From assembly GCF_000315625.1 (NCBI RefSeq), contig NW_005434621.1:330246-394245 (forward strand): a DNA stretch of 64,000 bases, in the 5' to 3' direction. This document shows, piece by piece, positions 36,992 through 40,096 of the stretch. Below the pieces are notes generated by a model, which saw nothing but the letters and a program-made list of their open reading frames with translations, was not told where the DNA came from and ran no database searches. A program made the translations under genes and the position numbers. Position 1 is the first letter of the stretch. Each line of letters opens with the position of its first letter. The stretch is from Guillardia theta CCMP2712 (Eukaryota > Protista > Cryptophyta).

Positions 36992-37503
36992 GTTGCCGTC
37001 TCTGCCGCTTCCGAACTGCCTCAGTGTGCAGTCTAGGCACTTTCTCGCTAGTGCCCTTGAAAGTCATCCTTTCTTCCTCCCTCCCTACCCTTCAATACAT
37101 AATCTCTCAGCGCTGGATCCGTGGTTGTTACTCCTCCATCAGCTCACTGAGGATCAGGTATGACGAGTCGATTTAAGGCTTCTTTCAGCTTCATACCATG
37201 TAACTTGCTCAATCGATACACGAGTGAGGGAACATCTTGATTTTCTACTCTACAAACTATCTATCCTTCTGACTATCACTGAATGCATATTCGTTGAGAC
37301 AATGCTCATTTACCAATCCACAGCAAACAAGCTTGACCTTCTTCAGGAAACAGAGGCAGGGCCCCAAATCTATCTCATCGACATGGGAGAACTCGATTGC
37401 ACCCATTTCACTCGAGCAATCAGATTTTCATGATACAGAGTTGTATTTACAAGTCCAAAGAGGTGTGGAAAAACCGATGTTAAAATGACTCAAGACTACA
37501 TGA

Positions 37504-37842
37504 CTAAGAGCAAGTGTCTGTGGACGTCCTGGGAGTCAACACGAAGATCATAACGACGAAGATGACGTTAATAACGAACATGCTTGCTACTATCCAGCAG
37601 TAAACATCATTGAGTTTCGTCTGCACAGTGTCGTTGCCTTCTTTGGCGGTGACCTCTTCCTTGCGACATGCCACGGCGGGTTTTGCTGCCGAGTCGAAGA
37701 ACATGAGGTTGTGCTCAGAGGATACCAGTCCCAATCTCTTTGCGAATTCTTGATGTCTTTCTTTCTCTCTGAAGCTTCTCTGCCCCTCCTTGGAGTATTT
37801 CAACAATTTCACCGCTGAGTTCACTTCCATAAAATCCACCAT
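37504..37842 (-). CDS. Small hypothetical protein with a C-terminal TM helix
   Basis: ORF with hydrophobic tail WIVASMFVINVIFVVMIFVL. Confidence 0.45.
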   Translation of the reverse strand: MVDFMEVNSAVKLLKYSKEGQRSFREKERHQEFAKRLGLVSSEHNLMFFDSAAKPAVACRKEEVTAKEGNDTVQTKLNDVYCWIVASMFVINVIFVVMIFVLTPRTSTDTCS

Positions 37843-38600
37843 CCTTGTCAAAGGCGAACAAATCGATTGAGCCGACAGACCGGAAACGATACGATAAGAA
37901 TCTTACTTTTCAATAGTAGCCTTCAAACTAGAAGAAGATTCTGCGAGCAGAACTCAACACTGTAATTGCTGCGAAAAAAAATCCTTGGAACCCTTCTGTG
38001 AAACCGGGAAAGCTGATGAGAACGAATTGAAAGGAGGGAAGACCAATCGAGGGGTCGAAACGTTAGGAATGCGGAGGAGAGGTGGGAAGTACGAGTGAAG
38101 GGATCGAGGAACGCGTGTTCAGATACCAATCGCTGCGACTCAGGGAACCAAAGGGTCGAAGGGCAGCCAAGGAGCAAATCGAGGACGGCTGTGTTGGAGG
38201 AGCAAGAGGAGCGTTTCACGAGATGAGGGGTGAGAGGGTAGGGTCAAGGGGTAATATCAAAAATGGGGGTAGTGATGGGTAATTTGTGGGGTGCAATTGA
38301 ACGATTTTCGGTAAAACCTAGTGGAGGGTGGGTGCATTTCAGATGCAGGCCTCCTTGTGATCTCTCATCTTTACTACGAAAATCAGCGTATCTTACGTCA
38401 GCGTGTCATTCTATGTCTGTGTTTAAGTCTCGAAAATAATTCTTTTCGAGCTGTATCGTGTGACAAACGTATATGAGGACCCCTCCATTTGACTAAACAA
38501 ACCCACCCCATTTAATTTTGACCCCTTCTATTGTGTTTTAGTTTTATGCAACGTGACATGAGCGTGACCGATGCTCTGCATCGTGACAACTCCGTGACAG

Positions 38601-38951
38601 TAACTTAAACTACAGAGTCGTTAGATGTTGACGAATACCGTACTACCAAGTGCTGTAACGATTGTGGTTCTGAGCTCGATGTGCTTCGACGGATTGAAAA
38701 TACAGGGAAAGAACCAGACGAGACCTGTAGGTTGAAAACAAGGAAAAGTGAAGTACGAGGATTGAAATTTTGCAGATCATCGAGGTAATGTCAAGTTTTG
38801 TATACTCCTGTAATTCACCTTTTCATCTAACTGTTATCGTGACAGCTGTAAAGGAAAGCCGATCAAATCCAGGGACTTGAATGCTGCACTGAATATACTC
38901 ACTTGTTTCAATGTGTTTCCTGAAAGACCGAATCACCTACGTCGCCCCTGA
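38601..38951 (+). pseudogene. Fanzor1/TnpB-like RNA-guided endonuclease, C-terminal fragment (RuvC-II, Zn finger, RuvC-III) with one spliceosomal intron
   Basis: 38624-38784 DVDEYRTTKCCNDCGSEL...EVRGLKFCRSS; intron 38785-38845 (GTAATG..CTAAC..ACAG); 38846-38951 CKGKPIKSRDLNAALNILTCFNVFPERPNHLRRP*. An apparent +1 frameshift separates NYRVV from DVDE. No RuvC-I is visible upstream. Confidence 0.85.
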
Positions 38952-39270
38952 GGTGAATTCAATGATTGTTGTCGCCCCCTCCCTACCCAGACTGCGTCCC
39001 TCGGGACTCGATGCCTAATTCCCTGCCTGCCTGCCTGCCCGGTGCCTGCCTCCATTATGATCCGATGTTTACGACATGTGATCATTGAAGTGACTGACTG
39101 GCATCATTTGGTAGGATTCATGTAAGGCTCCAACAACATCCGAAGACAATTTGGCAAAAAAAAACAACTGCCGTTGTATGACGGAGAGTCGCGGCTCTCA
39201 ATCATACGACGGCAGTTCTGTGCGAAAACTTAGTTCGTCGTTCAGAAGGGTATTCACATATTCCGTCACA
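38952..39270 (+). ncRNA. Candidate omegaRNA (Fanzor guide scaffold) / element right end
   Basis: Immediately 3' of the Fanzor stop. 16-bp stem 39166-39181/39202-39217 (one G-U) with inner GAGAGT/GCTCTC stem. Boundaries inferred. Confidence 0.5.
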
Positions 39271-40096
39271 TCATGAGGGAGAGTACCCGTGGTAGATAGA
39301 TTCGTGGCGTTTATCTATTAAACTACCCACCTAGGCTCTCCTAGGAGAATGAGGGGGTACTGCTCGGGAACAGACACAAAAAGATCATCCCACCCCAATA
39401 ATCCCTATGACTACCCTACCCTTTCCCACATAAAATTGCAGTCACGGGACGCCGGGGGCTGGATGATTGACGTGTGCCGGGCCCGGCGTGGCCCGGGGCG
39501 GCACGCCGGCGGCGGGCCCGGCGGCCCAGACACTGTTCACGGTAGGCTTCACGGTCCGTTGGTCGGATCAGGGCCCGGCAGTGTGTGACCGTGACGCCGG
39601 CGGCCTGTGCGACAGTGTCAGGGTCAAGCCTCCTCGACTCTCCTGATTGTCCTCGTACTGATTTTTAACTTAACTTTGAGTAAAGAAGACTCTGTCACTG
39701 AAGTTCGCGGACGTGCGGCCCGGCCGCTGGCGCCATCACACTGGCTGTGGCGAACTTCGGAACGGTCCGTCGCCGGCTAGTCCACCGTAACTCTGAGGCG
39801 GCGGCGCCGCGCGCCGCGCCGCCGGCGCCGCCGCTGGCCCGGCCCCGGCTCAGTGCCTCGGACGGTGACTGCCAAGTTTCGCGGCCCCGAGCTGTTCACA
39901 TGAATGACGATTGCTGGAGTTTTATTGGATTCGACCACTGTACGGTAGGGAAGGGTTGCAAAGGCTTGGATTGAGGCTTTCCGTCGATGCTCCAGGATGG
40001 TACGGTCGGTGGGATAACTGACCGCCTGCCGCCGTCATTGCGTCACGTTGAATGATTTTATCCGATCAGCTGAAACGCGCAAATGAAATTCCAGCC

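Follow-up and report, generated by a model that had tools for sequence, protein, structure and literature searches.

Fanzor1 nucleases, their presence in Guillardia theta, their partial and ORF-less loci, and their acquisition of introns and an NLS have already been published (PMC10432273, PMC10530073, PMC11423790), and intron capture and NLS acquisition are recognized as general Fanzor features (Jiang et al., PMC10530073). The Guillardia theta Fanzor1, GtFz1, is represented by PDB entries 9CER, 9CES, and 9CET (Saito et al. 2023, PMC10432273; Xu et al. 2024, PMC11423790). Its omegaRNA was published at NW_005434667 (GUITHscaffold_7) 896451-896603 (Saito et al., PMC10432273), and its TAM was measured as 5'-TTAAN (PMC10432273). 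In Spizellomyces punctatus, 42 Fz loci have been counted, of which 19 are full-length and the rest partial, together with 134 ORF-less ghost loci (PMC10432273).

Here we examine a Fanzor1 locus in a window of 64,000 nucleotides, by which we mean the whole stretch of DNA analyzed, located on scaffold 53 of G. theta CCMP2712. A first-pass annotation had placed the remnant of an intron-containing Fanzor at positions 38601-38951 of this window. The element continues well beyond that end, to 39320. Our analysis indicates that the locus is very probably a dead copy, truncated at its 5' side, of a Fanzor1 element that is young and multicopy in the G. theta nuclear genome and that we term family A. 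The fragment is an ordinary relic of a known kind, in a species whose Fanzor1 has already been characterized biochemically and structurally. What it brings to light are at least two more Fanzor1 families in G. theta, A and B, each with about a dozen or more copies and both unlike the characterized GtFz1.

It is useful to compare family A with GtFz1. The two occur in the same genome, belong to the same Fanzor1 class, and have one ORF in an element without a transposase. The GtFz1 TAM, TTAAN, matches the TTAA or TTAT that adjoins family A left ends. However, BLASTP aligns the two proteins at 35% identity over 51 aa only, and the RuvC-III residue is the canonical Asp (D642) in family A and Asn658 in GtFz1. 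In family A, a 61-nt intron interrupts the zinc finger and a second intron lies in the 369-nt 3' region; GtFz1 is uninterrupted at the zinc finger, and its stop lies ∼85 nt from the right end. The 31-nt target of the native GtFz1 guide (PMC11423790) has a single exact match in the genome, at C7:896589-896619, in agreement with the published coordinates, which identifies the genome as that of G. theta CCMP2712; the ORF at this C7 locus ends WWNRNVAGAFNIL, with the published noncanonical Asn. We therefore reject the identification of family A with the published GtFz1, which lies on C7 and is distantly related. Family A is a deeply diverged GtFz1 paralogue. In the part considered here, the G. theta loci file of Saito et al. 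(PMC10432273) is confined to scaffolds 7 and 348, so a detailed description of families A and B may be lacking. At least four intact copies of family A, with an Asp triad and a TTAA/TTAT motif in the left flank, are candidates for biochemical comparison with the Asn-containing GtFz1.

The closest paralogue of family A is family B, which has at least 11 copies and a ∼640-aa open frame (examples are L017, L018, and L020, on C6, C1, C14, and other contigs of G000). Over 590 aa the two families are 33% identical; they are alike in length and in the tip of the right end, and their motifs are the same. Unlike family A, family B has an intron-free zinc finger, 161 nt after the stop, and right-end flanks without TTAA; its right end reads ...GTCGTTTAGCTAATA. 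Downstream of the family B copy on C6, a topoisomerase-like (Toprim) ORF starts ∼270 nt away. The SpuFz1 elements of S. punctatus carry inverted repeats of 30 nt, and their 134 ghost loci have both ends, whereas family A has no terminal inverted repeats, its copy in the window is the only clean right-end-only fragment, and a ghost family of the S. punctatus kind is absent. The prokaryotic TnpB of IS200/IS605, exemplified by ISDra2 TnpB, resembles family A in its split RuvC domain and zinc finger (PF07282), in insertion beside a short 5' motif, in having a guide RNA gene at the 3' end (a candidate in family A), and in carrying subterminal hairpins rather than inverted repeats. Family A differs from it in being eukaryotic and nuclear, ∼250 aa longer, with introns, an NLS-like N terminus, and no TnpA partner.

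Results

The Window Fragment

Homology to family A in the window occupies 712 bp of the plus strand (Table 1); identity to the full-length copies of other contigs is 99.6-99.9%, and for the C111 full-length copy blastn gives 99.86% over the 712 bp. The onset of DNA homology with the other loci is sharp, at 38609. In pairwise alignment, the window piece corresponds to element positions 2001-2711, that is, to the last 711 bp, with zero substitutions and one inserted T. This single extra T, four codons into the remnant at 38621/38622, accounts for the frameshift that had been suspected near 38623. The peptide, the intron coordinates, and the motifs are present as first described: translation of 38627-38782 (+) yields a 52-residue peptide, VDEYRTTKCCNDC ... 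VRGLKFCRSS, and translation of 38847-38951 (+) yields CKGKPIKSRDLNAALNILTCFNVFPERPNHLRRP followed by the stop. A match of this kind far exceeds chance. Past the stop codon, element homology goes on through a 369-nt 3' noncoding region to 39320.

Table 1. Features of the truncated family A copy and its surroundings, in window coordinates
Feature	Position	Strand	Evidence or context
TTAA adjoining the truncation point	38605..38608	.	In full-length copies, TTAA or TTAT adjoins the left end
9-nt direct repeat TTAAACTAC, second copy	39318..39326	.	First copy at 38605-38613; the pair brackets the fragment
5'-truncated family A Fanzor1 copy	38609..39320	+	blastn; sole element part in the window
Exon 1 remnant, codons 574-631 plus 2 nt	38609..38784	+	Translation; SpuFz1/PpFz1 alignment
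Extra T relative to intact copies, frameshift	38621..38622	+	Pairwise alignment
RuvC-II Glu codon	38633-38635	+	Exon 1 remnant
Additional Cys codon preceding the CxxC pair	38651-38653	+	
First zinc-finger pair CxxC, Cys codons	38654-38656 and 38663-38665	+	
Third zinc-finger Cys codon	38771-38773	+	Exon 1 remnant
61-nt GT..AG intron, phase 2, between third and fourth TNB Cys	38785..38845	+	Spliced contig, run X1
Exon 2 coding part	38846..38951	+	Fourth Cys, RuvC-III Asp, RP..L tail, TGA stop
Fourth zinc-finger Cys codon	38847-38849	+	Exon 2
Intron of antisense transcript, 57 nt	38846..38902	-	CT..AC joint, X1 and X2 contigs, different studies
RuvC-III Asp codon in SRDLNAALNI	38874-38876	+	Exon 2
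TGA stop	38949-38951	+	Exon 2
162-nt GT..AG intron in the 3' UTR, starting 2 nt past the stop	38953..39114	+	X1 and X3 contigs, two studies
Structured 3' noncoding region, to the right end (...TTTATCTATTA)	39115..39320	+	MFE, inverted repeat I1

Of the coding sequence, the window copy keeps only codons 574-666, which cover RuvC-II, the zinc finger, and RuvC-III; the two introns are kept as well, along with the complete 3' region and right end. The promoter, the start codon, the REC/WED domains, RuvC-I, and the left end are missing. Searches of the 64-kb window with the whole protein (tblastn) and the whole element (blastn) found no further parts of the gene or element, in agreement with the first-pass annotation, which had taken the N-terminal part including RuvC-I to be lost. 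The exon 1 remnant contains no in-frame ATG. The upstream flank, 37400-38608, has no second occurrence in the genome, and no other repeat interrupts the element from that side.

Only the Glu of RuvC-II and the Asp of RuvC-III survive among the catalytic codons, RuvC-I being absent, and the window copy is catalytically incomplete. With RuvC-I, the promoter, the start codon, and the left end missing and the frame shifted, this copy is unable to make a nuclease, and its movement is probably ruled out as well. The fragment had been called a deleted nonautonomous copy. It is indeed deleted, but "nonautonomous" is generous for a piece whose left end is gone altogether; the fragment is more likely immobile than mobilizable in trans.

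Just upstream of the truncation point, at 38545-38603, the genome-unique DNA carries four clustered CGTGAC(A/C) motifs spaced ∼10-20 nt apart. A similar sequence, ATCGTGACAG, closes the 61-nt intron (direct repeat D1).

The Intact Element and Its Copies

Comparison of 15 loci defines family A as an element of 2711 bp. At least 13 other copies are present in the genome, at 98-100% identity. The 52-residue exon is 100% identical at 11 other places in the 87-Mb genome, several of them within open frames of 642-668 aa, so the full-length copies with the shared intron that the fragment led one to expect do exist. Frames are intact in at least four copies (C111, C29, C87, and C23). Most of the remaining copies have frameshifts or internal deletions. 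Internal deletions are seen in copies on C23, C61, C98, and C99.

The gene of the intact element consists of a 1895-nt exon 1, the 61-nt intron, and an exon 2 whose coding part is 106 nt. The 666-aa product begins with the NLS-like sequence MPRKRKR, and its RuvC residues are D417 (AIDPGR), E582 (VDEYRTTK), and D642 (SRDLNAALNI). A 5' leader of ∼280 nt, with a subterminal hairpin, precedes the gene, and the 369-nt 3' region that follows it contains the second intron and the conserved right end. The Fanzor gene is the only long ORF; no second one was found in the element.

The ends of the element are well defined. The left end starts CCTTTAATCGAC and forms a perfect 7-bp hairpin, GGACTCC-CGAA-GGAGTCC; TTAA or TTAT stands before it in 11 of the 12 copies with a left end present. 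The right end reads ...CGTGGCGTTTATCTATTA, and the base that follows usually repeats the fourth base of the left 4-mer. Indeed, the left and right 4-mers agree (TTAA/TTAA or TTAT/TTAT) in 10 of 11 copies, the window fragment counted. This pattern is compatible with a TTAW TAM and a degree of target preference, or alternatively with duplication of 4 bp. No terminal inverted repeats were found at the family A ends. A piggyBac-like cut-and-paste element was considered as an alternative identity and is ruled out, since the ends lack inverted repeats and no long ORF other than the Fanzor gene is present.

Family A behaves as a transposon, because it has 14 near-identical copies, defined ends, and a target-site preference. 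For the same reasons, the suggestion that the intron marks a family domesticated to nuclear expression is unsupported.

Two observations concern individual copies. L039 (on C29) and L048 (on C30) have right flanks that are identical for at least 60 nt and left flanks that differ, as would follow from either insertion into members of another repeat or rearrangement at the element. At G000:C36:78962-78991, a lone 30-nt perfect match to the family A right-end tip was found, and the search detected no other element part nearby; this trace may be a footprint.

Assignment to Fanzor1

The two isolated exons gave only subthreshold results in Pfam (PF07282 at E 0.13 for exon 1 and nothing for exon 2), because the pieces are too short. 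Profile searches were informative with full-length paralogues. The full-length homology accordingly rests on the intact copies, of whose last 711 bp the window piece is a copy at 99.9% DNA identity. Used as a single sequence, the family A exon-1 product (the first 630 residues) matches SpuFz1 (PDB 8GKH), its best single-sequence structural relative, at 6e-6, with DPGR and DEYRT aligned. A four-sequence profile matches SpuFz1 at 3.5e-16 and GtFz1 at 1.1e-10. For family B, a single sequence found no match among the solved structures, and a profile was required.

The wider protein family to which family A belongs is large. An initial search for homologous proteins gave just 3 matches, whereas an exhaustive profile search found 5495 relatives at E ≤ 1e-3 among 1.8 billion representatives. 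A 39-sequence profile (600 positions), drawn from these relatives, matches PpFz1 at 4.9e-30, SpuFz1 at 1.4e-27 (positions 12-586), and GtFz1 at 4e-19; these solved Fanzor1 proteins, all three of them, are its only matches. The RuvC-I Asp, the RuvC-II Glu, both Cys pairs, the RuvC-III Asp, and the RP..L tail align, with the motifs DPGR, DEfRT, and nRDlnAAlNI (compared with NRDMLSTCNML in SpuFz1). The zinc finger, C-ND-C and C-RSSS-C, the latter spanning the intron, aligns with C-PR-C and C-TNPN-C of SpuFz1. PF07282, the Cas12f1-like TNB domain, is detected at E ≤ 1e-3 in 25 of the 39 family members.

As judged by these profiles, family A is Fanzor1, and the original identification stands: the family profile matches the solved Parasitella, Spizellomyces, and Guillardia Fanzor1 proteins over nearly their full length, with the named motifs aligned. 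Homology with SpuFz1, GtFz1, and PpFz1 predicts that the protein of intact family A copies is an omegaRNA-guided, TAM-dependent endonuclease of double-stranded DNA.

Introns and Transcripts

The 61-nt intron begins GTAATG and ends GACAG, and it splits a Ser codon after the second base. The 61-nt length is shared by the 12 copies whose two splice sites were both identifiable. In run X1, one contig skips exactly 38785-38845, a GT..AG interval, and thus spans the splice joint; the RNA label of this run is a guess, and X17 alone is recorded as RNA (raw reads, ∼6% sampled). Family B and GtFz1 are uninterrupted at the homologous point, where family B reads CRSTNC and family A CRSS/S/C. Because of the spliced X1 contig and the intron-free paralogues, we regard the 61-nt intron as genuine, as first proposed, and as specific to family A.

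Two more introns were seen. The 162-nt intron of the 3' UTR has ends able to pair with each other (inverted repeat I2), and it lies where the omegaRNA is expected to begin. Together with the intron in the zinc finger, this intron 2 nt past the stop prompts one to ask how mRNA splicing is reconciled with guide-RNA production. The CT..AC skip abutting the sense intron reads GTGAGT...TTTACAG on the minus strand and is therefore the 57-nt intron of an antisense transcript; contigs with this joint retain the sense intron. No genomic copy lacks these intervals, so the joined forms derive from RNA, which supports the guessed RNA label of the runs.

The spliced contigs are evidence at the level of the family, since the reads do not separate the window copy from the 13 near-identical copies. 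Contigs that reach 38622 diverge there, as expected for copies without the extra T. Depth was zero over 38208-38585 in all four runs, and X17 depth on the element was almost none. Expressed sequence flanks the fragment on both sides, at 38100-38207 and from ∼39288 onward.

The 3' Region

The last 206 nt of the element fold with an MFE of -70.8 kcal/mol (z = -4.8 versus shuffles), and the fold includes a hairpin with 26-bp arms at 39166-39217 (inverted repeat I1) and a terminal hairpin. The tip of the right end carries a motif, CGTTTAnCTAnTA, common to families A and B. Rfam assigned the 3' region to no family, giving only chance-level, miRNA-like matches on the long hairpin. It is plausible that 39115-39320 is a candidate omegaRNA scaffold.

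Discussion

The manner in which the copy in the window was truncated deserves attention. The first 5 element bases kept, ACTAC, are also the first 5 bases of the right flank, and TTAA stands directly before the truncation point; a 9-nt repeat, TTAAACTAC, therefore brackets the fragment. One history is that a full-length element was inserted at this site and that its 5' 2 kb were lost later by ordinary deletion, rather than the fragment having been laid down truncated. We hold this to be quite possible, somewhat short of an even chance. Deletion is the commonest decay route of DNA transposon copies, internal deletions occur in the family A copies named above, and on this view the TTAA at the left junction is just the motif targeted by the original insertion. 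Yet a later deletion must start exactly at the first base of the element, and it leaves the ACTAC match and the 9-nt flanking repeat unexplained, a coincidence with odds of ∼1 in 1000. A different account, which we consider unlikely, treats the fragment as the scar of an aborted Fanzor-guided homing event. Copy-back of its own element has been demonstrated for bacterial TnpB. By analogy, a Fanzor-omegaRNA complex would have cut an empty site, reading ...TTAA followed directly by ACTACCCACC..., on the distal side of its TTAA TAM. From the right-hand broken end, the element would then have been copied inward, starting at its right end and with a filled allele as template, until synthesis halted after ∼711 nt. 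Finally, the ACTAC microhomology of 5 nt would have let the new strand reanneal on the TAM-proximal side. An aborted copy-in of this kind would account at once for the survival of the right end and the loss of the left, for the TTAA at the truncation, and for the 9-nt repeat. At the sole other 3' fragment inspected, the family B locus L019, neither the TTAA nor microhomology was present. If the scar reading were true, the genome itself would furnish evidence that Fanzors of eukaryotes promote the copying back of their elements. More broadly, the microhomology at the junction is a testable hint as to how 5'-truncated copies arise. Retroposition of a Fanzor mRNA in the style of a LINE would likewise yield 5' truncation, a bracketing 9-nt direct repeat, and a TTAAA-like site. 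However, both introns are kept, which refutes a processed retrocopy; a poly(A) tail is also absent, and the base at the right end is the same as in every DNA copy. We regard a processed pseudogene as practically excluded.

The dead copy that we favor must also be weighed against readings that give the locus a function. One is a guide-only, ghost-like locus, in which an omegaRNA with a guide from the local flank (from 39321) would be loaded in trans by the nucleases of intact copies. In its favor, the 3' region and right end are complete and match those of intact copies exactly, the 3' region folds strongly (z = -4.8), and trans-acting ghost omegaRNA loci have been documented for SpuFz1 (PMC10432273). 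RNA even covers the locus-unique junction of right end and flank, at a depth of ∼10 from ∼39288 in X17 and in a 337-nt X3 contig, 39295-39631. Against this, the upstream part that would bear the promoter is missing and depth is zero over 38208-38585. X17 depth is also zero over 39234-39287, in the scaffold just upstream of the junction, and the junction RNA is therefore not a molecule of scaffold plus guide. Moreover, outside the 14 young copies the right-end region was found in just one old copy and a 30-nt trace, and such loci do not form a family. We judge a guide-only locus improbable; the junction RNA is more likely the end or an exon of a neighboring transcript than an omegaRNA. Another functional reading, that a host gene has co-opted the Fanzor C terminus and has more exons upstream, could appeal to the spliceosomal intron and to the expressed sequence on either side of the fragment. 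Here the missing in-frame ATG, the frameshift four codons in, and the zero depth between 38208 and 38585 tell against it, and the 99.9% DNA identity to transposon copies, introns and noncoding sequence included, indicates recent copying and not an old co-option. Such a gene is very improbable.

The RNA at the junction has a distinctive profile of its own. Its depth begins abruptly ∼30 nt inside the right end, runs into the unique flank, and falls in X17 from ∼10 to ∼2 by 39557. The AG at 39294-39295 could be a splice acceptor, and a neighboring transcript may take an exon boundary or its start site from the right end. Farther into the flank, 39602-39687 is a repeat of ∼85 nt that has a very large number of other occurrences in the genome, 98-100% identical, with more than 1200 candidates at first look. 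In contigs of the RNA runs it is highly abundant, with a summed depth in the thousands, and it looks like a MITE or short dispersed repeat.
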